A stretch of 64,000 nt of DNA from Cycas panzhihuaensis (taxonomy: Eukaryota; Plantae; Cycadophyta), in NCBI GenBank assembly GCA_023213395.1, contig CM041465.1:126983741-127047740 (forward strand), read 5' to 3'. A program made the translations under genes and the position numbers. Numbering within the stretch: position 1 is the first letter of the stretch; every line of letters starts with the position of its first letter. This document shows, piece by piece, positions 376-47,090 of the stretch. The notes under the pieces are model-generated. The model saw only the letters and a list, made by a program, of their open reading frames with translations. It did not search any database and had not been told where the DNA came from.

Positions 376-3300
376 TCAGTCAGAGATGGAGGCCCTAAGG
401 CCGAGTTGCTTTCGGAACTGTTCAAACTTCACCCTCTTCAGTGGTTTGGTGAAGATATCGGCCACTTGATCTGCTGTGGGCAAGACTAATTGAATTGTGC
501 CATCATGAACTAGTTCTCTAACTCGTGGACTTTTGTACTTATATGTTTGGTACGATCATGAAATACGGGATTTTTAGCCATCCGTCCTGTAGATTGATTA
601 TCTACATGTAAGCTAGTAGAACTTGTTTGGGTGGCATTTAATGTATTCAACAATTTTCTGAGCCATATCACCTCCTTGCTTGTCTCGTAAAGAATGTACT
701 CACCTTCAGCTTGAGTCCGCAACTATCTTCGCCTTACGGATCTCCATGATATTGGTGCTGTTCCAAGAAATGTTACGCACCTGCACGTAGATCTTCCCGT
801 GTCTTTATCTCCGTGAAAGTCCGAGTCTGTATGCATAAAGTTTAAATTCGCATTGGGTTCATACAATGCACCATATTTGCTAGTCGTCTTTAGGTACCTC
901 AACACTCGTACAGCCTTGCCAATGATTACGCTTAGGATTTGTCATGAATCTTGCAAGAATCCCGAAGAGTGTGCAATATCGGCCTTGTGTTGGTAGTGTA
1001 GATGAGACTACCTACAAGTTGCACAGTAGAGTGTTGCGTCTGCCTCCCTATTGTCACCATCAAGAGAGCTTAATATTAGGCTCCATAGGTGTATCCAGTC
1101 GAGCACCTTCCAACTGAAACTTTGTCAGAAGATCGTTGATATATTTTTCTTGGGAGAGAAAGATTTTTCCATCCTTTTGAGTTACTTCAATTCCCAAGTA
1201 ATATTTCATCAACCCGAGGTCAGACAATTCAAAAGTTTTAGCAAGGTCCTTCTTCAGCTGGCTGATTACCTGTTCACTATTCCCTGTTATGAGCATGTCA
1301 TCCACAAAGATTAAGAGGTAAGTGACTTTATCATTTTGGCGCTTGATGAATAATGTTGCATCAATATCTTGATAGTCACAAACCTCATATCCAAGTTGCC
1401 TCATTCTTTCAGACAACTTGGTAAACCAAGCACGAGGGGCTTGCTTTAGGCCGTACGAGGACTTTTTGAGCCTACAAACTTTATGCTTCTGACCGTCAAT
1501 CTCGTATCCTTCTGGCTGAGCCATGTAAATTTCTTCTTTAAGGTCCCCATTGAGAAATGCGGTCTTAACATCGAGTTGGTGGATTTTCCAACCCTGTTGA
1601 GCAGCCAAGGCTATTAGAGTTCTGATTGTAGGCCACTTGGTTGTAGGAGCAAAGATTTCAATGTAGTCAATGCCTTCCCTTGCGTGAATCCTTTTGCTAC
1701 CAACCTCGCCTTGTGTTTTTCTAGGGTGCCATCTGATCTATACTTGTTTTTGAACACCCATTTATTTTGAACTACCTTTCTTCCAAGTGGTAGATCAACA
1801 AGCTCCCATGTCCCGTTCTTAATAAGAGATTGATACTCTTCGTTCATGGCATTTCTCCCAGCTGCATGCTTCTGACTTCTTGGTACGTTAGGGGCTCTTC
1901 ATTAAGAGCAAGATGCGATTCTGGTTCAAGCTCAACGGAAAGTGATTCATGCATCCTTGCTCTATGGGCACTTCTAGTGCCAGTTTTGCCTACCTCATCT
2001 GGTCGCATGTCCTTGTGTAGCTGGTAGGCTTCACGATAACCTCGAGTTGGGAATGATGTTTTCATTTCCACAACCTCTTGATCTTCGTTTTGATCCTGAA
2101 AAGGATCATGTGAAATATTTGGCACGGAGGAAGTTGACGATCTTTGGAGAAGATGGGCGACCACGGATGTTGGAGAAGATGATCCTTCGCTATGGCTTTG
2201 CCTTTGTCAACTTGGTCGCTTGCAAATGATGGTCTGGATGTGTACACATTGGATTGGAGTCACTGACTTGTATCCTCCGAGGCTCTATTGTCGATTCCAA
2301 GATTTTAAGCAACTGCTCAAAGATCTCCCCTAAATTTTGGAACTGGACATCAAATTCAAGAGCATCATTAAATCGGTATGAAGGCGTCTTGGAGTCAAGT
2401 CCGAGTAATTGATCTTCGCCTCGCAAAGATAACATCTCTAGTGATGATGATTTTGTGCTCAAGGTATAAAACCTTATATCCCTTTTTGTCCATAGGGTAT
2501 CCGACAAAGATGCCTTTGATGGCTCTATCTTGGAGCTTATTTCTATGTTCCCGCAAAATATGAGCATAACAAGTAGAGCCAAAAATTCAAGGCGAGATAG
2601 AGGGGTTTGTCCATACCACATTTCATGTGGAGAGGGCCGAGCTTGGAGGGACTAACGGTGTTGATGCAATACAGCAGATCCGGATAGCCTCAAAGATAGA
2701 TAGGGACATTCTTATATACCAAAGATAGCACGAGCCATATTCATGATGGTCCTGTTCATACGCCTAAGAACTCCATTTCTTTGGGGTGTACCGCAATAGT
2801 GGTCCGATGTTTGATTCCACGTTGACGTAGGTACGATTCAAACTCATTGGATGTGTACCGCCACCATTGTCGGTCCCGAGTATTTTGATCTTGAATCCGA
2901 TTCATTTTCCACGCGGGCCTTGAAAGCTTGAAACATAGAAAAGCTTCATCTTTCTTTGCAAGAAAAGCTACCCATACTTTCTTGGTAAAATCATCAATGA
3001 AAGTAATATAGTACCACTGCTTTGATAGAAGGGATGGGCATAGGACCGCATATATCTGAGTGTACAAGCTGCAAAGGTTGGGTAGATTTCCACTGACTAC
3101 GAGGAAAGGGTTGTCTTTGAGATTTAGCAATAATACATGCTTCACATTTAAAGGGCTTGAGGGGAACTTAGGCAAACCAGAAGAGTGTCTTGTAGTTCTC
3201 TTAAACGATCAATTTTGATATGGCCCATACGAGCATGCCATAGAGTCGCTTGGGACAACTTTGAGGAGTCGGGGTTGTGGTAAAAACAAATTCATCATCA

Positions 3301-4847
3301 ACATAGTTGACTTCAGAGGATGGTAAGCCAGTTAGGCGAAAAAGTTTACCATCAAGAATTCTGGTCATAACCACAAAGATTTGAAGGAGGGTGAATGACA
3401 CGTAGAGTTTGATTGTTTGCGCTACACTCGATCAAATCCACGAGAGACAAGGGTGGACAGGGAGAGCAGATTCTCGCCAGTGAGGTGAATATATAAAACA
3501 TCAACAAGTGTAAAACTGGAAGGCCCGGGAGTTTCGTGCAAACTGCTCCAAGTCCTTCGACTAGCTGAGATGATTTGTCAGCCATGTATATAACACCACG
3601 AACTTCAGAGTCAAAATCTTGAAAGAATCGATGACAAGTCATGTGTTGTGTTGCTCCAAAGATCCATGATCCACGATGAAGTATTTGAGGTAGCACTATT
3701 TGCAACTCCAAGTGGTGAAGGCAAAAGTGAATAAGCATAGCCACAATGAGCCTCAATATACTTAGTGGATCTATCAACAACATTTGATGAAGTGGTCCCA
3801 ATTCTTTGAAGGTGTGCATGAGCAAATTATGCTCCACCAAAAGCATCTTCAAAAGAAGTATTATCAACATTATGTGCACCATGGCGTTGATAACTTGGTA
3901 GTTTGTTGGTGGAAGTTCGCAATTTTGGCATAATGTCCTCTTCTATTACACCTTTGGCACACGATTGTTTGATTTCCACCAAGTATTAGGCCGGATTGTC
4001 TCTCGACATCGGATCTAGGTCCGTGTTGATTATTTTGCCCTTGGCCTTGAGACTGCTTTTTGTTGGAATTGAGGAGCTCGTTGACTAACAGACGTTGTCC
4101 TTGTTGTCTACCTCTTCCTCTTCCTGAATTACCACCTACGAGAGTATTGACCTTGATTTTGGTGTAACAAAGATCTTCTTCCACTTCAAAAGCAAAGATC
4201 AATTGGATCCGATGTAGTGGCAAAGTTGGTATCAAAGGTCTTATCAAATTCAATGAACTTATCGTGAAGATCCTCAAAGTTTAGGGTCTTTAAAGTTCCA
4301 ATCGATTGAAGACTCCCCAAATGATTTTTATAACTGGGATATGGAGACATGATGAATCAAGAAAGCCCATGTAATGCATAGAGTTTTAAAATCTTTATCA
4401 ATGGCTTGCTTGATTGGACGAAGGAGATTGATTGTTTCACTTGCATGTCCTTTTCGCATTTTCAATTTGTTCATCTTCAAAGACTAAGTGAACAAATTCT
4501 AAGTCCGATTTAGTGTCAAAGTTCTTCTTAAGAACTTCAAGAACTTTCCATGTCAGTATCATGTACACTTCATCAATGAGATTATGTAGGAATAATCATG
4601 ACAAGCAAGATCCCCGCACGGATTTTATCATCATCAAGTTCCCATTGGCTTAGCTACGCCTTGATGGGAGCTTGGAGCACCTCCTCAAGCGATTGTGGTA
4701 GTCAGAATGCAATGGTGGTGTAGGTTGTAAGTGATCTCTCCATAGACCTTCATACTTTGCAAAGATTTCGACACGATGAACCACATGTCCCAATTTTCTT
4801 TCCCTTTTAGAATGCGTTCACATTTTGCTTGAACTGCGTGAAGACAT
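376..4847 (-). mobile_element. Ty1/Copia gag-pol (element A), frameshifted
   Basis: Copia domain order. Gag start ATG at 4847; zinc knuckle CQRCNRRGH; protease WIFGATQHM; integrase YYITFIDDFTKKVWV; RT HQLDVKTAFLNG, YGLKQAPRAW, FVDDML; RNase H HDRTKHI, ADIFTKPL. Confidence 0.95.
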
Positions 4848-12324: not shown

Positions 12325-15300
12325 ATGGCCTCAAATATTAGTAATGTAATAGTTTTAAAGTTTGATGGTGCTAACTTTTTAAATCAGAGTAGAAGAATGA
12401 AATATATTTTTATGTCAAAGGATATATAGGACTTAATTAAAACATATTATGAAGCACTTGAAAGCAATGCCACTAAAGACTAAAATAAGACATACAAGGA
12501 GAACAAAAATCAAGACAACAAATCTTTACACTTTAGAGGATTACATTTTTTTAAGAGTGAGTGAAGCATTTATATTAAAGGAAATATGGAACATATTGAA
12601 GATCACTTATGAAGGAGTTGTTGTATTCAAAACTCTAAATATTGAGGAGTAAGTTTGAGAACTCCAGGATGAATAATAATGAAGGAGTCAATGACTTCAT
12701 CATAAAAATATAAGGCTAGTCAATCAAATAAGGGCCTTAGGAGAAGTCATAAGTGAACAAAGAGTAGTAAAAAATATCTTAAGATGTGTAAATAACATTT
12801 AACGATTTGAAATAGTTACCATAACTATTAAGGTCTCTAAGGACCTTACTACCCTTAAGATAGATTAAGTGCAATGTTGTTAGTTATTGAGGAGAAAGAG
12901 TATGGAATTAAATTTCTAGAGCATGTATTTATTAATAAGGCAAAGATAAGGCCTCTATTTAAGGGCAAAATTCTAGAAGAAGAGGATAATATTCTAGAGG
13001 AAGAGGTCAATGACCTAAAAATCAAAATCAGTTTTAAAGACAAGGTCAAAGTCATCATCAAGTACAAGTTCCCTTTTATCAAGAACAAAATTAATTTTAA
13101 AGACAAAGATGTTTTTAAGGCCAATTTAATTAAGTCTGGGGATAAAATGTTAAATCTCAAAGAAGCGATAAAGTATAAATTCTAAGAGGTAAAAACTAAG
13201 GACAAAGAGGAAGAAGTCCTAGGGGTAGAGGAATAATCTAATATTAATATTGCCATAGAGGTTGGCATTTAGAAGAAAATTATTTTACAAAAGGATCTAA
13301 TTTACAAAGGGGGACTACTAATACATCCGTTGAAGAAAGATAAAATAAAAAATTATTTCTATCAAGTTTAATAGTAAATAAGAAAGAAGATAGTTGGTAC
13401 ATAGACTTGAGATGTTCTACTCACATGACAGATAAAGAAGAGTGGTTTAAAGAATTGGACAACACTAAAAGGAGTAAGATTATATTTGGTGACAATACTA
13501 CTTAAGTTATAATTGACAACGGAAATATTTCCAGATAAATAGATTTTGGAGGAATAAGGTGTATTAATAATGTACTTCATATCCTAATACTTAAGAAAAA
13601 TTTACTATTAGTGGGAGAAACAATGCAACAAAAATATAAGGTAATCTTTAATAATAGGGAGTGTACTATCAAAAATAAGTTAAGGAATAAAGCAATAGTA
13701 GTTAATGAATAAATGAGTAGTGATAGTTTATTCAAACTAGTTATTCCCTTGACTAATTATTATGCCTTAAAGGTTTCCACCAATGTAGATAGTGAAATAT
13801 GGCATAAAAGACTTGTCCATATGAACTATAACATTTTGTCTTTAATGAAGAAGATGGGAATAGTGACAGGACTACCTAATATTGAACATAGTAAAGAAGT
13901 GTATGAAGAGTGTATACTTAGTAAACAAGAAAGGAAAGAATTCTCTAATAAAAGCTATATGGCTAATGGGCCTCTTCAATTAGTATACATAGACTTATGT
14001 GGTTTAACAGATGTGGATTTACTTAGAGGAGCTAAGTATTTTATGATATTCATTGATGATTTCATAATGATAACTTGGATTTACTTTCTCAAATTCAAGT
14101 CAAATACACTTAAATACTTCATTGACTTCAAAAGCATGGTTGAAAAATAAAGTAGACTTAAAATTTTAATCCTAAGATTAGATAATAGGAGAGAATTTAT
14201 TTTTAAACGAATTTAAAGATTATTGCCAATATTTTAGAATAAAGAAATATCTCATAAATCCTTATACCCCTTAGCAAAATGTGGTTGTAGAAAGAGAGAA
14301 TAGGATAATTACTAGAATGGTAAGAAGTATGCTTAAGGACATGCATATGGGAAATAAATATTGAGTAGAAGCTACATACACAATTGTTTATTTGTCAAAC
14401 AAGTATACCACCAAAGTAGTTAGATGGATTATACCTAAAAATCTTGGATGGGTTATAAGCCAAGTATTAAACACCTAAGAGTTTTTGGGTGTATAGATTA
14501 TACATATATCCCAAAATAAAGGAGGATAAAATTAAATGACAAAAGCACTAAATATATATTTATAGGATATGGTGACTTATCTAGATCTTATAAACTTTAT
14601 AATATAAAAGGAAAAATGATTATTATAAGTAGGGATGTTATCTTCAAGGAAGATAAGTTTTATTAACAGGAAATTATTGAAAAAGATGAGAACAAAACTA
14701 TTATGGTGAAAGTAGACTCTAACTCAAGTGGCATAAATGTACCTAATACAAATGAAATAGGACCTTTTACTTCAAGTCAAAGGGTCCTAAAATAGGTATA
14801 AACGGCGTATAATCCTCAAAATATATTAGATACTAACTTTGAAAAAAAGATAATAACATCTCAAAGTGTGAATTTTGCACAAATGACTTAAGTTATAAAG
14901 TTTAATAAGCCTCACAACTTTAAAGAGGTAAAAAATGAAGATAAATAAAAGGATATAATAAAGGAGAAGTATAATGCCTTAGTGAAAAATAACACATGGG
15001 AGTTAATAAATTTTCCACCTAACAAGAATGTTATTGGGATAAAATAAGTTTATAAGACGAAATATAAATTAGATGGGTCTGTTGATAAATATAAGGCAAG
15101 ATTAGTTATAAAGGGCTATGCTCAAATTGAGGGCATAGATTATAATGAGACATTTACACCTATTATAAGGTTAGAAAGAGTTAAGTTAATTATGGCATTA
15201 GTTATATAACAAGTTTGGATAATACATCAAATGGATGTGAAAAGTGTCTTCTTGAATGGCTATATAGATAAAGAAATCTATATCCAACAATCTTAGGGAT

Positions 15301-27651: not shown

Positions 27652-29315
27652 AGAATGTCTTATGAAAGATCTCAAGTAGATATGAAAGATAAAGGTCTGA
27701 AACATATAACTAGGAAGCTTTGGCAACACCTTAGTATGGTCACTAAAGATTGTTCCACATCATGGAGCCAACCATCTATTAGATCTATATAAAAGAAAAA
27801 CTAATTATGAGATTCTTAAGGTTGGACCTTTCAACTAATGTCTATGAAGAGGTATATTTACTTATGTGCTTAAACAATAATAAGTAATTAAACTAACTGA
27901 CAAAATCAACTACTTCACACATATATAATAAAATCAAACTAAAAGTCTAATTAAATATAAAAACTCAAATCAATCAAATAAGTTAAAAAAAAAGTCTCAT
28001 TAACTATAGGGAGGTCATAAGCAACTTTCTAATAGGTGGAAGGATCATTGGAGGTCCTTACCCTAAAGTAAATGCCTAAGGATTCCCCTATTTCTACCCC
28101 AAAACCCTTCCTATGGATAAAACTCTACCCTAGACCTCTATTCCCACCTAAAAAAGGAGTAATCTATATTGCACTAGCTATAGATCAATATGATTTATCA
28201 GTGCATGGACTTAAGAGACCTCAAAACCTAGATTAATAACACTATCATAGGTCAACCATTAAGGACTACTTCACCTAGTAATAATCCATTTATGAGGATG
28301 AATGTCTTAGGGATACCTATTTTTGACTCTAATGAGTTTTGATACTTATAAATATAAGGAGGATGTGCCTCCCAACCTAAAGGATAATGGAAAGAAACTT
28401 CCTTTAGTATTCAATACATGACTAGAAAAAATATTATGCCAAGGAAAGAATAGTTTGTACACAAGGTAGGTCAAGTCTCGATTAATTAAAAGACTCCTAA
28501 TGATGATAAATATTTATCCATAGGAGAGGAAAAGCTTGTACACCAAGGATGCCAAGTCCTAACTGATCAAACAAGTCCTAGACAAAGGCATAAAATCTAT
28601 CCTAAGGGGACTAAATAAAAATAATCCATACCTATGTGTAAATCTAGAATGTAATTTAAGATTAAATATAAATAGTAATCATGCATGTAACATAACAATC
28701 AAATCATGCATAAATAGATGATAATTTATAGACAAATTTATAGAATGTCTTATGAAAGATCTCAAGTAGATACAAAAGATATAGGTCCCAAATATATAAC
28801 TAGGAAGCTTTAGCAACACCTTGGTATGGTCACTAGTAATTGTTCCACATCATGGGGCCAACCATCTATTAGATCCATATAAAAGGAAAACTAATTGTGA
28901 GATTCTTAAGGCTGGACCTTTTAACTAACCTCTATGAAGAGGTATATTTACTTATGTGCTTAAACAAAAATAAGTAATTAAACTAACTTACAAAATCAAT
29001 TACTTCACACATATATAATAAAATCAAACTAAAGTCTAATTAAGTATAAGAACTCAAACCAATCAAATAAGTGAAACAAAAGTCTCATTAACTATAGGGA
29101 GGTCATAAGCAAGGATTCCCCTATATGGAAGGATCATTGGAGGTCCTTACCCTAAAGTAAATGCCCAAGGATTCCCCTATTTCTACCCAAAAACCCTTCC
29201 TATGGATAAAACTCTACCCTAGACCTCTATTCCCACCTAAAAAAGGAGTAATCTATATTGAATTAGCTATAGATCAATATGATTTATGAGTGCATGGACT
29301 TAAGATACCTCAAAA
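27652..29315. repeat. ~575-bp direct duplication (27652-28226 and 28742-29315)
   Basis: Both copies run from agaatgtcttatgaaagatctcaagtagata to cttaaga.acctcaaaa; roughly 90-95% identical. Confidence 0.95.
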
Positions 29316-30065
29316 AGCTAATCAAGGAGAAATTTACAATTAGAATCTTATCTTTGCTAGCCCATCCAAGATTTAGATATTCATATTTAAGAATACTTTA
29401 GACCTCTCATTCATTTTTCTTCTAGTCTCAATTTATAATCACCTCAAGAACTTTGCAATACCTCTAAAATAAGGCTAAACAAATAATAGTATGACAACCT
29501 AAGTTGGCTTGATTGGGAAATGCTCCTTCAAAGTCTAATTGTGAAGATCCCCCTTCACATGTTATAGAGTTAGAAGAAGAAGAAAAAAAGAATTAAACTT
29601 TATTGTTTTATTTTAAATTAACTTCGTGAGGATATTTATTCTTCAAGGATTTAATTCTATTTACATGTTTTTTTTCCTAAACTAATCAATTCAATTCTTT
29701 ATCTAACTTGGATGTATATGTGTTGGCTCAGTAGTAGATGTTGGGATAATTTCACAAGTGGTTACCTTAATTTTGAGCATAAGACCAAACTAGGTTTACA
29801 TAAGTCAATCCCAATCCCCATATCCTTTAATCAAACACTAAATATTTTTTTGACTTTTCCTTTTTAAATTCTCCATGTAGTCCTTTCAAGTCTAATTTAC
29901 AGAGATGTCCTTAAGATTTTTGTGTGCCTATTGTTGATTCCTTAATTTGTGACACTATAGACTTACCTTAATTACATCATGAGGAAGATTCCTATTCCTT
30001 GGCGGTAGATCCTATCAGAGTTGCCAAAGTTCTTTAAAGTTTTGATAAAACACTTATTTGATCCC
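29316..30065 (+). repeat. Dispersed repeat module F copy 1 (also 43220-43830 +, 46000-46720 -)
   Basis: aagctaatcaaggagaaa...gaagatcccccttcacatgttata...ctttaatcaaacact shared by the three copies. Confidence 0.9.
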
Positions 30066-30569: not shown

Positions 30570-31393
30570 CTTAGCAAAAATTATGTGGGGCTTAACTCTA
30601 TAATGAGCTTAAACTAATTAAGTCTTCCAAAGAAGATAAGAAATAAAAGTTAATATAGAATGACATATTTTGAGAAAAGATAAGACCACCTAAGAAGACA
30701 AGCTCATAGCTAAGTTATAAAATCCAAAAATCTTTTCATAAATAAAAGGGGCCAGGTCAATCTATCATGCTCAAGAGGATTTTTTCTCATTAGATGGGAT
30801 TTATCACTTATCTAAGGAGCGATAGATTTGTATGTAGAAATGTTATATGAATCTTAGTTAGTTGGGTGTATCAAGTATTGATAAAAATTTACACAATAGT
30901 TTGTGAGCACAACACTCAAATTCTATTCAACTATTGCAAAGATCATTAGAGAGATTGGAGGACTATTCATATAAGTTTAGTATTAGCTACTTTATGCAGT
31001 ATTATTGATTGCCAATTAAACAAACTAATGGTAGATTTATATAAATGCTTATGATATTTCCTAATAGGTTTCTTTAACCTTAAACAAAACCACCTATGGT
31101 GCCCACTAATTTTGCCTCATAGTTACCTTAGGACTCTTATTTTAATGACGTTAAGAACGTACGTAGTGATACAATTAAACGTAGAGAATGGAAAGAAAAC
31201 CATTAAAGAATATCATAAGGAGAAGTCTTTTTAAAGCCCTTGCTTTGGTCACTACTATAAGAGGGAGTTTTGTGGGATTAGAGCTTTGAGAAAGAAACAA
31301 AGTCCAGCTTTGTATAAATTGTTGCGCAATGTATGACCCTTAAAAAAGTTCTGTCCTATAGAAAGGTTTAAACTCAAAGAGTTTTCTTAGAAA
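30570..31393 (-). mobile_element. Retroelement-derived repeat (probably gag/protease region of a Tat-like gypsy) directly downstream of, and overlapping, the kinase ORF
   Basis: Colinear with 35500-35886 plus 36464-36864 (e.g. gagattggaggactat.cata, actaatggtaga.tt.tat.aatgctt, ccatt.aagaatat.ataaggag.agtc.ttt). Confidence 0.75.
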
Positions 31394-32545
31394 TGAACGG
31401 CACTTTCCTGTGAAGAAATGGTGCTTTAAAGCTTCCTTAGCAGATAGACGCTGGTTGGGATCAAACCTCAACAAACCGTGAAGCAACTCAATGAGGGCTC
31501 CCGATGAGTGGTCCTCAGTTTGATTGACAAGTTTCCGTAGGGGGGCTAATCTCTGGACTGCTCGAACACACTCTCTGGATGCAGCCCCCTCTGGCCAGTT
31601 GAGTTCCGTGCCGTTTCTGATGTACACTCTTCCACATTGTGCTGCCCATTTCATCATATATTGCGGAATTGGTCCCAATACCCGCTCCATCATTGCGAGG
31701 TGCTCCAAATCTTCATGGGTCCGGAAAAGAGCATTTCCCGTGCATAATTCCACCAAAACGCACCCAACACTCCACAAATCACATGGGTAACTCCATCCAA
31801 TACCCATAATCACCTCAGGTGCTCGGTATCCTCTGGTGGTAACTACCGAGCTATGATGCCGGTCCTCAAATGTAGCGCTACCAAAATCTATGAGTTTAAT
31901 TGCATTTGGCATGTGAATGCAGTTATAATGCTTCTCAGGCACCTTTGCATATTCAGAAGAGACGAGAAGTATGTTCTTAGGCTTTAGGTCCGTATGTGCC
32001 AGTGTCAGGTCATGAATAAATGCAACGGCCTCCAAGAGCTGACGTGCGTATTCTCGAACCAGACAGATAGGCAAGGGCCGGTCATCGTTTTTACGTAATA
32101 CATCATATAAACTTGGTCCAAGCTTTTCACAAACAATGCACACATGGTTACGATAACTGAACCAATCCTTGAACTGTAAGCAGCCCCGGAATTCATTCCC
32201 ATCATACTCTGCCAACGTGCGGAGAACATCAATTTCAATCATAGCTGCAACACCATATTTCGGTACACTGCGTATAACCTTGATGGCTACATACTCTCCC
32301 TTTTCACGATCCCAACAATCTAAAACTCTTCCGTAAGTTCCTTCTCCCAGTTTGCCAATAATCTTGTATCGAGGTGTTAAATTTTCTCCAACCTCAAACA
32401 CGTAGTGCCCATCTTTATCATCTGGTCGCCATGGAGGGGATGCAAAGCCAATAGAAGATGAAGAACAACAACAAAGAGCACGGCCATGAATCGACCCCTT
32501 CTCCTTTTCGTCATCCTCCCTTCTCTTCCCCTGTGCGCTCCCCAT
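31340..32545 (-). CDS. AFC: LAMMER-family (AFC/CLK) protein kinase, intronless retrocopy, 401 aa
   Basis: SPPWRPDDKDGHYVF, GEGTYG, VAIK, AAMIEIDVL, HTDLKPKN, IDFGSA, YRAPE, EHLAMMERVLG signature. One uninterrupted ORF; ATG in gatATGG context with an in-frame TGA 4 codons upstream; CpG-containing and GC-richer than the flanks. Confidence 0.95.
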   Translation of the reverse strand: MGSAQGKRREDDEKEKGSIHGRALCCCSSSSIGFASPPWRPDDKDGHYVFEVGENLTPRYKIIGKLGEGTYGRVLDCWDREKGEYVAIKVIRSVPKYGVAAMIEIDVLRTLAEYDGNEFRGCLQFKDWFSYRNHVCIVCEKLGPSLYDVLRKNDDRPLPICLVREYARQLLEAVAFIHDLTLAHTDLKPKNILLVSSEYAKVPEKHYNCIHMPNAIKLIDFGSATFEDRHHSSVVTTRGYRAPEVIMGIGWSYPCDLWSVGCVLVELCTGNALFRTHEDLEHLAMMERVLGPIPQYMMKWAAQCGRVYIRNGTELNWPEGAASRECVRAVQRLAPLRKLVNQTEDHSSGALIELLHGLLRFDPNQRLSAKEALKHHFFTGKCRSFLRKLFEFKPFYRTELF

Positions 32546-32699
32546 ATCAAATCCTCAGCCAAGAGACCAACCAACCAACTTTTCCAGCGTGTGTATCGAA
32601 TTTCAGAATTTATTACACTGAAGGTCAGGACACTGTCCAGATAACAGTATCCACGAATTAGCGCGCTTAATGGCAGAAACCATAGAATCCTGATATTTT

Positions 32700-32800
32700 T
32701 CCTATGCGGCCTACCATTATATACATACATTTATGCCTGTGGCCGACTTAGAGGTGAGGCGGGCCACAACGCATACACCTCAGGCATATCCTTATTCCAT
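32700..32800 (-). promoter_or_regulatory. Candidate promoter of the kinase retrogene
   Basis: TATATAA on the - strand at ~32718-32724, about 175 bp upstream of the ATG. GTGGCC/GGCCAC motifs (TCP-site-like) at 32738-32768. CpGs retained. Confidence 0.35.
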
Positions 32801-33002
32801 ACCTCTCTCTTCTTCTAACTCTTCGTTCTCTTTCCCTTGTGGAAGGATAGAGTAGAGTAATTTCATCGGACGGCTATGGCCTTGCTAATATTTATCATCA
32901 TCCCTAAAACAAAAATCACCTCGGAGTGAACCACATTATGGACGCAACAAAGGAAAGCATGATACACTAAGTGAAATAGAATTATAATTCCCTTGGTGAT
33001 AC

Positions 33003-33419: not shown

Positions 33420-36400
33420 AATGTGATTTATGGATAAAAGATTCAAGATAAATGTTATCGAAAGAAATGCTTAGGTTTTTGTCATCGATGATGGAAAGAA
33501 GATATGAACTATTATAAATAACCTTGATTACTATAAAAATGCCATGCCAACAAGAATGAAATTTATTAAGGTAAGTTCATTATTAGGTTAACCCAAAAGA
33601 AGAATGAAGTAAATAAGTTGAAAAGAAGAAAGATGAGCGATTTGATCATATGTTAAATTGACTCACATTTTAATATCTTCTAAACTATTAGAGTCATGGA
33701 AGCAATCTTCATCAAGGTTTTTTAGTTTAATGAGGCAAGTCTCAAAGGCTATGGTATTCAAAAGCTGGTTGCAGATATCTAGATGAAGTGTAGGAATTTT
33801 AGTTTCAATGGGAATTATAGATTCTTGACCATAAATAAGAGGAAATATGACAAATCCATTAGTGGTCATGACAATGACTCAATTAAGATATAAGGATATA
33901 TAAATTTGACAATGTCAATCGATTTCATATTTGTCAATAATAGTTTGCAAAAGTGATAATTAAGAGAATAGGCAAGATAGGACGATGTGAAAGGCAAGGT
34001 AGATACAAGCGGTATTTTTGGCAATGGAGCTATAAATGTTGAATGTTCTATGATATAAAGATGAGACACAAGAGTAATCAAGAGTGAAAGGATGTGGGCA
34101 TGACAAGGAATCCAATGGTATAAATGAACACAATGAATGTGGCCGTTTTAGGAAAAAATTACTGGCAAGACATATTATACAAGGGAAGGGCAATAAATAT
34201 TAAAAGAAGCTAACTTCAACTCCTTTTGCATAGGCAATTCCTTAACAAAAAAATACTATGGATCCATTTAACAGAGGAAGGAAGGTTGATAACAATGATG
34301 ACACATATAGATTGTGAACCATCATTATTAGTCTAAGGTTAAGACCCATCACAGAGGCAATATCAGTTTTAATTTTCTCAAATAGAAGGGAATCTCTATA
34401 AATATTAAGGGAGGCTGCATATTCATAAGAGGAGTTAGAAGCATCGTCTCCTAAATAAGAAGAATCCCCTAAGAGTATCAAAATAGTAGCAAAAATTAAA
34501 GTGAAAGAAGAGGTAGAAATCCTCACAAAAACTCAAGAAGAGAAGGTTAAAGAGTTATTAATTCAATAACAACATCGTCATCATTATCAAGAATATGAAT
34601 AGGATGAATAGAGGTAGAGTACAAATTTATTGCTAAAGGAAGATAACAAAACACCTTCAGAATCAAGCAAAGAAATGATAGTCAGCCTAGAGTTTAACCC
34701 TTGGATTGTTGAGTGAATGAAGGACAAGAAATAAACATTAACTCCTATGCAATTTTTAGTGCTTGATAAGGTCATTGAAGAAAATTTTTATTAGTGGGGT
34801 AAGTACGACATAAGTATAAAGAAATCCATTATGAAGGGAAAAAGGAAATTCAAAATAGCTATATGGTCAATTAAGGATGACACGATAATATAATCTATAG
34901 ACTTGTACTAAGTACTAGGAAATTAGTAAAGAATAAAGTATCTACTCTACAAGTTTAATTATAATAAACAATCCAAGAATATGAAGCCTAGAGAGTAGAG
35001 AACTTGACTCTAAGCCTTAAGTTAGAGCAGTTTAGGGACACTTGGCGAGGAGTTATGGGACAAGTTCTTAAAGGAGAGATTAAGTTGGAAATGAATGTGA
35101 TACTCAAGACCTCAGTAATTGCTACAGAGTTTTATAATCATCCAAAATCTGTTTAGATAAGATCTTTAAGAAGGAGAAAATCTTGAGGCCTCATTTATTG
35201 AAAATTTTAAGCTAAATTTTCTTTTTATATGAGAAAATCCAAGGAATAGAACAGATGGTTATTAAAACAAAATTAAATTAATCAGGAATATTCTTGTAAC
35301 TTAAAATTAGATTTATTAAGGAAGGGACCAATAGCAACATAATTCATAAGCCATCCATTCAAAAATAACAACATATTTTGGAAGTATGGATACATAAAGG
35401 TATAATAGTGATAGGAAATGCCATGGATCTAAATGTTGCTATAAATAATTATGTGGTTGAAATATTTTATATCATCCCATATCTAAATTCAATTATATAA
35501 CATGAGGAAAAAATCATGGATAACTAAGCTAACTAGGTCTTTGAAAGAAGATATGAAATGGACATTAATATAAAATAACCACTTAGAAAGATAAACTTAT
35601 GACTAGCTTATAGAATTTAAAAACTTTTTATAACCTAAGGGGCTAGGTTAATATGTCATACTCAAGAGAATTTTTTCTCAAAAGATGGGCTTTATCACTT
35701 ATCTGACAAGTGGTAGTCCTCCTTGGAGAAATGTTGCATGAATCTTTGTTAGTTATGTATACTTAGTATTAATAGAAATTTATGCAATATTTCTTGAGCA
35801 TGATGCTCAAGTTCTGTTTAACTATTACAAAGGTAGTTCGTGAGATTGGAGGACTATGCATACATAAGTCTAACATTAGTTACTTTTGTTGCGTATGTGA
35901 CAACAATATATAAGGATGCTAAAATTTTGACTTGCTTTTGGTGCAAATTTTCCCACCAACTTCTCTCTTGGGGTGTGGGGAGGCTAGCCCCTATCCACTA
36001 TTGTTGTTAGGGGTCCAAGGCAGGCATCACCCTCAAAATAAAATTTTAAGGTTCAAAACCTATCAAATATTAAAGAGAATCAATGTTGTTTATCACAAGA
36101 CCCTAGATTTGACAACTAAAATTTTGTACTTTCTTATGATACTCTTCATGCAACCTACATTCAGTAATTTGGTTATTATTGTTATTACTTTGAGAGCTTT
36201 GTGGGAGCTATAGTACATATTTCTATTCTTGATCAATAAAGCTTCATACCTTTCCTGTGTAGATGTTTCCCTACCACTCTATTAGGATTTTACCATGTTA
36301 AATTTGGTGTACATAGTAATTCTTATGCTTTTCATGTGTATACGTTGATTTATCTCTCGTTTACGTACTTGCATTTGATTATAGTTTTAAATCTTGTTCT

Positions 36401-37200
36401 TATTACAAAATAGAAATGTTCCTGGTGATAGATTCGGTTAGTTAAAACTAGGTTTTCTCAATAACTTTATATGGTAATCTTGATGGTTAAGTAAATTAAC
36501 TAATGGTAGAATTGTATGAATGCTTTGAGTCTTTCATAGTAATTTTCTTCAACCTCAAATGAAATCACATATGGTACGTGTTAGTTTTAACTTACAGTTA
36601 CCTTGGGTGTTTTACTTTGATGACCTTAGGAATGTATGTAGTAATAAAATTATACATAGATGATGGAAGGAAGACCATTGAAGAATATTATAAGGAGGAG
36701 TCCTTTTAAATCCCTTGGTTTAGTACCTAGCGTGGGAGGAAGTGTTGTGATATTAGAGATTTACAAAAGAAAGAACAAATTTGTATAAAATTCCCCATAC
36801 CTCAAACTCCCCATAGAAGTTATCTCCCATAGAAAGGTTTGAGTTTAAAGTGTTATATAAGAAACATAATCATTTATAAGAGGAGGCTATATGAGATGAA
36901 GTTATGCAAGAGACTTATTTTGTGCAGAAGGTATTTATATAAATAGTATAAAAGAAAAACTAATGAAAGGATGTACCGTATAAGACACAACCACATAAAA
37001 GGTGTCCGTTTAAAAAATAAACATAAATAGAAGTTTTATGAGAAGAAGCATTGGAAGAGATATGAATATGAGAGTGCATTCTATAATTTGGACACTTGTA
37101 AAATGAAGGATTATAAAATATAGTTCTCATGCTTATGGTTAAGAGGGGTTTCATTAAAACATTAGAATTAATTTTTTATTTACATATGGACCATACATTT
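33420..37200 (-). mobile_element. Decayed Tat/Ogre-like Ty3/gypsy (gag?-protease-RT-RNase H-integrase)
   Basis: Integrase tail LIYGQESIIPIETKIPTL...LKNLDE and KFHSCWHGIFIV (degenerate KF..W.GPY); RNase H-like SYEYAA...IYRDSLL; protease-tail-like EFRYGDDIK near 35480. Confidence 0.7.
35887..36463 (+). mobile_element. Solo LTR (577 bp) with 5-bp TSD
   Basis: TGTTG...TCAATA (CA>TA) flanked by ACTTT at 35882-35886 and 36464-36468; absent from the paralogous sequence at ~30990. Confidence 0.9.
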
Positions 37201-42670: not shown

Positions 42671-43844
42671 AGAGTAAATATACGTTTTTAATAGTTATAA
42701 CTTATTGAATGTTTTTTAAAATGTAATAATAAAATGGCAATAACTAAGGATAAGAGCAAAGAAGATCATGGATATTTTATCTAGAAATAGCAACATATCT
42801 TAGAAATAGGATTAGACATGAGCAAGGATGTAATGAATAAAATAAGAGAGATCAAACACACTTTTTCCACTATTTTAAGACAAATGCTTTAATCTATCTT
42901 GTTTCTTATCTCCTTTATGTTGGGTCAAATCCCTATCTTGTTAAAACAAGAATTACAAAGAATCACAATTGAAGAATTAACAAAGACAAAATAATGATTT
43001 GATTTCACTATAGCAGCTAAGGTTGAGGAATGGTCCATAGGTGTTTGGAATTAGAGAACATAATAGGTTGCCCTTAAAAGCTTACTCAAGTCTTAAGATG
43101 AAAGGATTAATAATATTGAAGATCAAATACACAAGTTCCAATGGGATTTATAATTGATAAGGCCATTGATTATATAAATTAAGAAAAGGTAAAAACAAAA
43201 GTGGTGAAACTTCTTCCGAAGCTAATCAAGGAGAAACTTACTACTAGAATCTTATCTTTGCTAGTCCATCCAAGATACTTATTCCTATGACAATGATTTA
43301 GATATGCATACTTAAGAAGATTTTAGACCTCTCACTGGTTTTCCTTCTAGTCTCAATTTATGGTCACCTTAAGAACTTTGTCATACCTCTAAAATAAGGC
43401 TAAACTAACATTACTTTGAAAACCTAAATTCGCTTAATTGGGAAATACTTCCTTCAAATTCTAATTGGGAAGATCCCCCTTCACATGTTATAAAGTTAAA
43501 AGAAGAAAAAAATAAAAAAAGGAATTAGACTTGAATGTAACATTCTTTTATATTTTAAATTAACTCGGTGAGGACATTTATTGTTTAAGGATTTAATTCA
43601 ATTTACGTACTTTTTTCCCTAAACTAGTTAAATTTAATTCTTTATCTAACTTAGAGGCATCTGTGCTTGGTTGATAATAGATGTTGGGATAATTTCACAA
43701 GTGATTACCTTAATTTTGAGCATAATTCCAAGCTAGGTTTATATAAGTCAACCCCATTCCCCATATCCTTTAATCAAACACTCAATAATTTTTTGACTTT
43801 TCCTTTTTAATTTCTCCATGGAGTCCTTTTTAGACTAATTCCTA

Positions 43845-45999: not shown

Positions 46000-47090
46000 T
46001 TTAAAGGGATCAAATAAGTGTTTTGTGGAAACTTTAAAGAACTTTTCCATCTCTAATAGGATCTACCACTAAGGAGTCTTCCTCGTGATGTAATTAAGGT
46101 AGGTCTATAGTGACTCCATGGAGAATTTAAAAAGGAAAAGTACAAAAAATATTAAGTGTTTGATTAAAGGACATGGGGATTAGGGTTGACTTATATAAAC
46201 CTAGCTTGGTCTTAAGTTGAAAAGTAAGGTAATCACTTCTAAAATTGTCCTAACATCTACTATCGAGCAAGCATATATACCTCTAAGTTAGATAAAGAAT
46301 CAAATTTGACTAGTTTAGGGAAAAAAACATGTAAATCGAATTAAATCCCTAAAGAACAAATATCCTCGCCAAGTTAATTTAAAATAGAAAAGAATGTTAC
46401 AATCAAGTCTATTTCTTTTTTATTTTTTTCTTCTTCAAACTCTATAACATGTGAAGGGGGATCTTCCTAATTAGACTTTAAAGGAAGCATTTCCCAATCA
46501 AGCCAGCTCAGGTTATTATAATAATATTAGTTTAGCCTTATTTTAGAGGTATCATAAAGTTGTTAAGGTGATTATAAATTGAGACTAGAAGAAAAACCAA
46601 TGAGAGGTCTAAAATCTTCTTAAATATGCATATCTAAATCATTGTCAAAGGAATAAGTATCTTGGATGGACTAGCAAAGATAAGATTCTAATTCTAAATT
46701 TCTCCTTAATTAGCTTTTGAAGAAGTTTCACTACTTTTATTTTTACCTTTACCTAATTTATATAATCAATGACCTTATCAATTCTAAATCCCCTTTGAAC
46801 TTGTATATTTGATATTTAATATTATCAATTCATTATTTTTTCTTTATTGGTTCTTCAATTGTGATCCTATGCAATTCTTGTTTTAGCAAGATAGGGCTTT
46901 GACCCAACACAAAGGAGATAAGAAATGAGATAGATAAAAGCATTTGTCTTGAAATAGTGATAAAAGTATGTTTCATCTCTCTTATTTTATTCATTACCTC
47001 CCTGCTAATGTCTATTCATGTTTCTAAGATATGTTGTTATTTCTAGATAAAATATACATGCTCTTCTTTATTATTATCCTTAGTTGTTTA
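46000..47090 (-). repeat. Inverted copy of 42740-43830 (module F and upstream); continues at 50089-50300 beyond the LINE
   Basis: Reverse-complement match, e.g. 46445 taacatgtgaagggggatcttcc vs 43468 ggaagatcccccttcacatgtta. 50089-50300 is the reverse complement of 42580-42745. Confidence 0.9.

Follow-up and report, generated by a model that had tools for sequence, protein, structure and literature searches.

The AFC1, AFC2 and AFC3 proteins of Arabidopsis are LAMMER/CLK kinases of SR proteins, encoded by genes with many introns and characterized by a basic motif in the N-terminal region. In AFC2, a putative nuclear localization signal is encoded by exon 1, and isoforms that lack it arise through alternative splicing (PMC3371709). 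Here, we describe an intronless open reading frame (ORF) for an AFC-type kinase in a stretch of 64,000 nucleotides of the Cycas panzhihuaensis genome (assembly GCA_023213395.1, contig CM041465.1, positions 126,983,741 to 127,047,740 of the forward strand), which we call the window and whose own numbering is used throughout. The product shares with the Arabidopsis proteins the kinase fold, the EHLAMMER signature, the SPPWRxDDKDGH junction and the overall length, but its gene has no introns, its N-terminus has no basic motif, and it belongs to another clade, that of gymnosperms. A first-pass annotation of the window had read this N-terminus as a new candidate dual-acylation signal that would retarget a splicing kinase to membranes. 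We favor, with a probability of about 0.6, an N-terminus that is the by-product of a deletion in a diverging member of an intron-free LAMMER/AFC family, its acylation-like motif not being a selected feature; the odds of this reading overlap with those of the alternatives weighed below, as it spans both coding and decaying cases.

The kinase ORF is the sole ORF of at least 200 amino acids within the window and thus not a chance ORF. Its product matches the Pfam family PF00069 (Pkinase) with E = 2.3e-49. The catalytic residues Lys89, Asp186 and Asn191 are intact in invariant columns, as are the DFG (residues 220-222), APE (242-244) and EHLAMMER motifs, and the LAMMER signature, of the EHLAMMERxLGP type, reads EHLAMMERVLGP at residues 281-292. 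The product begins MGSAQGKRREDDEKEKGSIHGRALCCCSSSSIGFA (opening letters MGSAQGKRREDDEKEKGSIHGRALCCCSSSS) and reaches the plant AFC junction SPPWRPDDKDGH at residue 36, in agreement with the roughly 35 residues given at first pass. The in-frame stop four codons upstream and the good context of the ATG, with G at both -3 and +4, were likewise recovered. Judged by its domain, the predicted protein is still a LAMMER kinase, the basic motif being a feature of the plant AFC N-terminus and not of the kinase fold.

The best protein match to the ORF is Ginkgo biloba Gb_36852 (P0001), with 71% identity across 94% of the ORF, followed by two transcript-sized Logan contigs (P0002 and P0076) and then by bryophyte and fern AFC proteins. 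Cluster look-ups identified P0011 as a Welwitschia mirabilis protein (EP00252_P023418) and revealed a Picea sitchensis cDNA (ADE75896.1) in the cluster of P0076, from which we take P0002 and P0076 to be Pinaceae sequences. In a maximum-likelihood tree, a clade with a support of 100 unites the window ORF with the Ginkgo protein, the Welwitschia protein and the Pinaceae pair; it is separate from the AFC3-type and AFC1/2-type clades of seed plants. Within this gymnosperm clade, kinase domains are 70-73% identical to that of the window copy. Its members share with the window copy the MGS(A) start, a GK(K/R)(K/R) block, the layout KGS...SSSS...(F/L)A-SPPxRPDD and an HHFF near the C-terminus; the window copy differs by the absence of the RPxKRxR motif and of seven kinase-insert residues (KNSSDPG), by two extra Cys residues and by a C-terminal tail derived from a repeat.

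Residues 1-48, scored separately within full-length candidates, have Ginkgo Gb_36852 as their sole significant match (E = 1.3e-7, 70% identity over residues 5-48). In the alignment, the window copy reads MGSA-Q-GKRREDDEKEKGSIHGRALCCCSSSSIGFA-SPPW, the Ginkgo protein MGS-EDCDKRPEKRRRVAEAQPNN-GKKKEHDDKGSSLGRALCSSSSTRFA-SPPW, and the Pinaceae proteins, in 14 variants, MGSA[DE]RDRRPQKRPRI...NNLGKKK...KGSNV.VAVYSSASTR(L/F)A-SPPR. Relative to these proteins, the window copy lacks about 18-26 residues, the basic RPxKRxR motif among them; in addition, it has two more Cys codons inside a TGT/TCT simple run and two further residues (EK). Ala4 is the last residue ahead of the deletion junction, which falls at about 32531-32534. 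On these alignments, the window N-terminus is a deletion derivative of an ordinary first-exon region, neither new sequence nor a captured exon; the proposal that it is new is contradicted by the Ginkgo match and by an MGS(A) start common to Ginkgo and all 14 Pinaceae variants. The reported absence of the nuclear-type motif, on the other hand, was confirmed in a pattern test, in which all 108 homologues whose N-terminus is complete carried RPxK[RK]x[RK] or a close variant and the window ORF alone was without it. A short N-terminus is not unusual per se, as monocot AFC3 proteins have 26-36 residues ahead of SPPxR. A search with the first 90 residues returned no close orthologue; its matches were to unrelated AFC proteins, in their conserved SPPWR...kinase part alone.

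Two smaller features of the N-terminus can also be placed. We assign residues 7-9 (KRR) to the clade's second basic cluster because both BLASTP and the clade alignment match the entire block GK(K/R)(K/R)E-DD-K-GS; their placement as a remnant of RPxKRxR, which is what an alignment of 121 AFC proteins made with MAFFT gives, was rejected in favor of the GKKK cluster. The Cys cluster is indeed encoded by three TGT repeats, as had been pointed out, and it is not conserved: the N-terminal region of the Ginkgo protein has one Cys, those of the Pinaceae and Welwitschia proteins have none, and a close paralogue found in three related species reads ...REDDDKGGSH-GFASPPW, without the entire RALCCCSSSSIG segment (contig loose ends at 32450 in runs X1, X2 and X8, described below).

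These comparisons suggest the following course of events. The window copy would be one diverged member of a multi-copy, intron-free kinase family within the gymnosperm-wide AFC clade. An in-frame deletion would have removed the RPxKRxR motif, a putative nuclear localization signal, from a normal first-exon region, leaving as inherited parts Met-Gly-Ser-Ala, the GK(K/R)(K/R)E...KGS block, one Cys, the Ser run and (F/L)A, and two further Cys codons would have arisen within the TGT/TCT run. By accident, the deletion would have set Gly6-Lys7 behind Gly2, so that the match to a loose myristoylation pattern would be a by-product. The copy would have evolved under relaxed, not absent, constraint, and its native 3' end would have given way to a repeat. 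The change actually shown is the loss of the nuclear-type motif, so that any protein produced would more likely be cytosolic or diffuse than nuclear; lipid anchoring is possible, without any indication of it from the comparisons.

In the plant CDPKs, CBLs and RLCKs, acylated Cys residues at positions 3-6 stand beside the myristoylated Gly, and the motif is conserved among orthologues. The window product resembles CDPKs, CBL1/CBL9 and RLCKs in having Gly2 followed by a permissive residue at position 3, a small one at 6 and a basic one at 7. It differs from them in the Cys residues: residues 3-6 are Ser, Ala, Gln and Gly, the first Cys is residue 25, and the cluster at 25-27 is thus 23-25 residues away from Gly2. 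The sequence MGSAQGK matches the permissive N-myristoylation pattern G-{EDRKHPFYW}-x(2)-[STAGCN]-{P}, tested as MG[^EDRKHPFYW]..[STAGCN][^P]. Hence, the myristoylation half of the proposed dual signal, with its Gly2-Ser3...Gly6-Lys7, stands as a pattern match; the S-acylation half does not fit the CDPK/CBL arrangement. From general amino-acid frequencies, we estimate that about 19% of Met-Gly starts, or about one in five, would match the pattern by chance, for which reason the match is weak evidence for N-myristoylation of the window copy.

The relatives are informative about the age of the pattern. Pinaceae N-termini start with MGSA but fail the pattern because of Arg6, and they keep the basic motif; the Ginkgo N-terminus passes only with acidic residues at positions 4, 5 and 7, and it also keeps the basic motif. 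Gly2 is thus common to Ginkgo and Pinaceae, most of which fail the pattern. As far as these N-termini can tell, Gly2 is older than the pattern match, and the match was produced by the deletion, which placed Q-G-K after MGSA.

A membrane-anchored signaling kinase derived from the LAMMER family, with Gly2 myristoylated and either Lys7-Arg9 or S-acylated Cys25-27 as the second signal, is the explanation put forward at first pass. Apart from the pattern match, it would be in keeping with the hydrophilic linker behind the motif and with the loss of the nuclear-type motif. The known example of c-Abl 1b (MGQQPGK), which is myristoylated, has the same Gly6-Lys7. Cys residues 15 and 26 of eNOS are palmitoylated, and by this analogy a palmitoyl site far from Gly2 is not impossible. 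According to published data on the two lipid modifications, the N-myristoylation consensus prefers Ser/Thr at residue 6, which is Gly in the window copy, and eNOS sets a precedent for the combination of myristoylation with palmitoylation (PMC5492501); in human NMT1, Lys7 forms a specific salt bridge, the sole specific contact of residue 7, and is therefore favorable (PMC7048800). Against such an anchor stand the inheritance of Gly2 from relatives with a nuclear motif, the non-conserved and distant Cys cluster, an acidic run (EDDEKEK) after the three basic residues, the chance frequency of the pattern, the relaxed constraint described below and the lack of an RNA run with the locus. What points to a membrane signaling kinase is the motif itself, and we consider this explanation very improbable. 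In the literature collection searched, no paper combines "LAMMER kinase" with "myristoylation".

The structure of the gene resembles that of a processed retrocopy in part. Like plant processed retrocopies and retrogenes, the copy is free of introns, colinear with an mRNA, fused at the acceptor site of a paralogue and located among retroelements; intron loss is evident from the uninterrupted ORF. An intron-bearing paralogue is represented in related species by DNA contigs that stop at 32443 or 32445, with an intron-like ...ttttag directly before (A)SPPW, which indicates that residues 1-34/35 of the window copy correspond to one or more upstream coding exons, fused as in a cDNA. The 3' side differs from that of processed retrocopies. 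The stop codon of the ORF is supplied by a dispersed repeat, and the native C-terminal end, the 3' untranslated region and the poly(A) are missing; no A-run follows the stop codon, and no target-site duplications were detectable, a further search not being made because the 3' boundary is lost. In the self-BLAST comparison, 30989-31393 matches 36464-36864 at 73% identity, and the three repeat pieces have the same orientation. A reading of the copies at 30685-31393 and 35578-36864 as long terminal repeats of a kinase-carrying element was considered and is unsupported, given identities of 73-76% and an interrupted second copy. Because the kinase family is amplified to many copies, the window copy may derive from DNA duplication of an older retrogene instead of from its own retroposition.

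We compared contigs of four runs (X1, X2, X4 and X8), which come from four related organisms, with window positions 31100-32900; the kind of each run is a guess, and copy numbers drawn from contig depth are not firm. Two classes of contig were found. Low-depth contigs (2-12x) are 98-100% identical to the window, both flanks included, which indicates that the locus is common to the related group. One contig of organism A covers 32387-32900 with 9 differences in 514 nucleotides and has no indels in the start codon region; a start-region contig without indels is present in one closely related species (X1), and the depth at the start is low in X2 and X4. High-depth contigs (150-980x) are cDNA-like, about 90% identical and colinear with the ORF over hundreds of bases, as exemplified by a contig of 343 nucleotides that covers residues 255-378; they carry a natural C-terminus, ...FYKLK followed by a stop. 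The window form of residues 1-31 occurs only at single-copy depth, which makes the deletion private to this locus.

The high-depth contigs are more likely multi-copy DNA than RNA. We take the runs to be DNA on two grounds: the contigs form huge, fragmentary sets (about 47 million records, amounting to roughly half of run X1, with a mean length of about 64 nucleotides), and intron-like loose ends and flanking DNA are present. On this view, the kinase family comprises tens of copies or more; in the case of RNA, the high depth would point to a strongly expressed paralogue. Other paralogues, found at single-copy depth, have their frame shifted by insertions of TTAG at 31436 and of T and GAC, together four bases, at 31588-31590. 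Taken together, the contigs point to a strongly amplified family of intronless LAMMER kinases with birth-and-death turnover, decayed members included. In a family of this size, a single open frame says less about function than it might appear to.

The window copy is strongly diverged. Its terminal branch has a length of 0.79, four times that of Ginkgo (0.19), with a median of 0.14. In the alignment of 121 AFC proteins, it departs from the consensus at 21 of the 178 columns that are conserved to at least 95%, whereas among the other 120 proteins the median is 1 such departure and the highest count 10. These include E190K in HTDLKPEN and H239G in TRHYRAPE, which alter residues each conserved in 120 of the 121 sequences, as well as R98G, N279D and Q275R. 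Codon 190 encodes Gln in one high-depth paralogue (31978 T>G), which suggests that this residue may vary across the amplified family. Among 373 columns, 52 residues are private to the window copy, compared with 39 for Welwitschia, 7 for Ginkgo and 6 for Pinaceae. Many of the nonsynonymous differences between the window copy and the contigs of about 90% identity restore the consensus on the contig side (D279N, R275Q, V263I, R360K and C326S), which places the changes on the side of the window copy.

The distribution of these substitutions bears on the question whether the copy is alive. Lineage-specific substitutions of the window copy affect 12.9% of conserved, 32.6% of intermediate and 39.4% of variable columns (p = 1e-6 versus uniformity), those of its relatives 3-4.5%, 13-21% and 14-36%, respectively; conserved columns are struck 3-4 times more often in the window copy than in its relatives. 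We read this as constraint that is relaxed but not absent. A copy that has been silent since its origin, a pseudogene whose frame stayed intact by chance among many copies, would account for the long branch, for the altered residues in the catalytic loop and the P+1 loop, for the frameshifted members of the family in related species, for the replacement of the 3' end by a repeat with no poly(A), and for the setting among decayed Copia fragments. It is less easily reconciled with additional substitutions that still avoid conserved sites, or with the CpG observed/expected ratio of 0.68 in the ORF versus 0.25 in the whole window. In a simulation on the window ORF, moreover, 45-54 random amino-acid changes under neutrality left the ORF free of stops with a probability of only 0.04-0.075, a figure computed before frameshifts are counted. 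We regard a copy dead from the outset as possible, albeit unlikely.

Several of the same observations weigh against the favored reading of an unselected motif left as a by-product of a deletion. The ORF is intact, and all its length differences from relatives are in frame; its substitutions still avoid conserved columns about threefold; only 4-7.5% of simulated neutral histories remain stop-free. The ORF and about 450 nucleotides upstream retain CpG (observed/expected 0.56-0.90) amid surroundings of 0-0.3, and the part of this island upstream of the ATG could be a retained 5' untranslated region or an unmethylated promoter. Three or more related species have near-identical contigs, among them coverage of the start region free of indels. 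Furthermore, MGSAQGK resembles genuine substrates of N-myristoyltransferase with Gly6-Lys7. Such observations are in keeping with a gene that continues to code for protein and may be expressed, in which case the new N-terminus could matter.

A functional, fast-evolving paralogue would be transcribed and translated, would have left the nucleus through loss of the basic motif and would have shifted its substrates through E190K and H239G, with lipidation absent or irrelevant. The intact frame, the avoidance of conserved columns together with the intact catalytic core, the CpG retained over the ORF and its 5' flank, the 98-100% identity of the locus in related species and the expression of clade members in other gymnosperms (a Picea cDNA, a Welwitschia transcriptome and transcript-sized contigs of Pinaceae) are all consistent with it. 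The departures at 21 near-invariant sites, the repeat in place of the native C-terminal end and 3' untranslated region, and the few open frames expected by chance among tens of copies or more count against it, as does the outcome of our run search, in which no run listed for the locus was recorded as RNA. The only run of a related species that may be RNA contains next to none of the words of the locus, and run X8, whose kind is not recorded, covers bins of the ORF only, without flanks, which is too little to call transcription. On balance, we consider a functional paralogue of this kind rather unlikely. Within the favored reading, we give roughly even weight to a paralogue that still codes for protein and to a copy in early decay.

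Should the protein be produced, it would represent a naturally occurring LAMMER/AFC kinase that lacks the nuclear-type motif and would offer a ready test of the role of the basic N-terminal motif in plant splicing kinases, and of their redeployment outside the nucleus. In the improbable case that it is expressed, N-myristoylated and membrane-associated, it would represent a localization class new to the LAMMER family. As it stands, the finding is of modest interest, since the lipid-anchor idea depends on a permissive motif made by a deletion. The amplified intron-free LAMMER copies, at varied stages of divergence and decay, are probably more interesting than the N-terminus itself, because amplification to many copies is an unusual fate for a dosage-sensitive splicing regulator.

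Table 1. Features of the kinase locus in window coordinates (a dot marks features without strand).
Feature	Position	Strand	Basis or remarks
AFC/LAMMER kinase ORF, intronless, 401 codons	31340-32545	-	ORF list; Pfam Pkinase; 71% identity to Ginkgo Gb_36852
Protein kinase domain, residues 60-378	31412-32368	-	Pfam; departures at conserved columns
Non-catalytic N-terminal region, residues 1-35	32441-32545	-	Homology to P0001 and P0002 in the N-terminus; internal in-frame deletion in the window copy
Gly2-Ser-Ala-Gln-Gly-Lys7, match to permissive N-myristoylation pattern	32525-32542	-	Pattern test
Lys7-Arg8-Arg9, probably left over from the second basic cluster of the clade (Ginkgo and Pinaceae: GKKK)	32519-32527	-	BLASTP to P0001; clade alignment
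(TGT)3 encoding Cys25-27, one Cys common to Ginkgo only	32465-32473	-	Sequence; alignments
Ser28-31 run, common to Ginkgo (SSSS) and partly to Pinaceae (SSAS)	32453-32464	-	Alignments
Putative former exon-exon junction just ahead of (A)SPPW	32442-32443	-	Contig loose ends at 32443 (X1) and 32445 (X2)
In-frame TGA, four codons 5' of the ATG	32555-32557	-	Direct sequence reading
K190 codon	31976-31978	-	Catalytic-loop Glu of HTDLKPEN to Lys
G239 codon	31829-31831	-	P+1-loop His to Gly
Last 17 codons and stop, inside the dispersed repeat	31340-31393	-	Self-BLAST; kinase homology ends at about residue 381
Dispersed repeat adjoining and entering the 3' end of the ORF	30685-31393	.	Self-BLAST copies at 35578-35886 (76%) and 36464-36864 (73%)
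CpG-retaining, G+C-rich island	31000-33000	.	G+C 0.42-0.51; CpG observed/expected 0.56-0.90

Upstream of the ORF, a TATATAA-like element, gtatgtatataatgg, is found on the minus strand at 32706-32726, about 170-180 nucleotides upstream of the ATG. Several upstream ATGs lie between this element and the start codon, and its relevance depends on where transcription starts. Elsewhere in the window, we found broken fragments of the Copia type, with RVT_2 (E = 7e-53), rve and Pol beta-barrel domains at 1060-4277 and a gag-pre-integrase domain at 13713-14150. The segments 27652-28226 and 28742-29315 form a direct repeat pair of 92.5% identity, about 1.1 kb apart. A further repeat family, with 82-83% identity, comprises 29313-29897 and its copies at 46112-46718 and 43219-43840, one of them inverted and one direct, at a distance of 14-17 kb.

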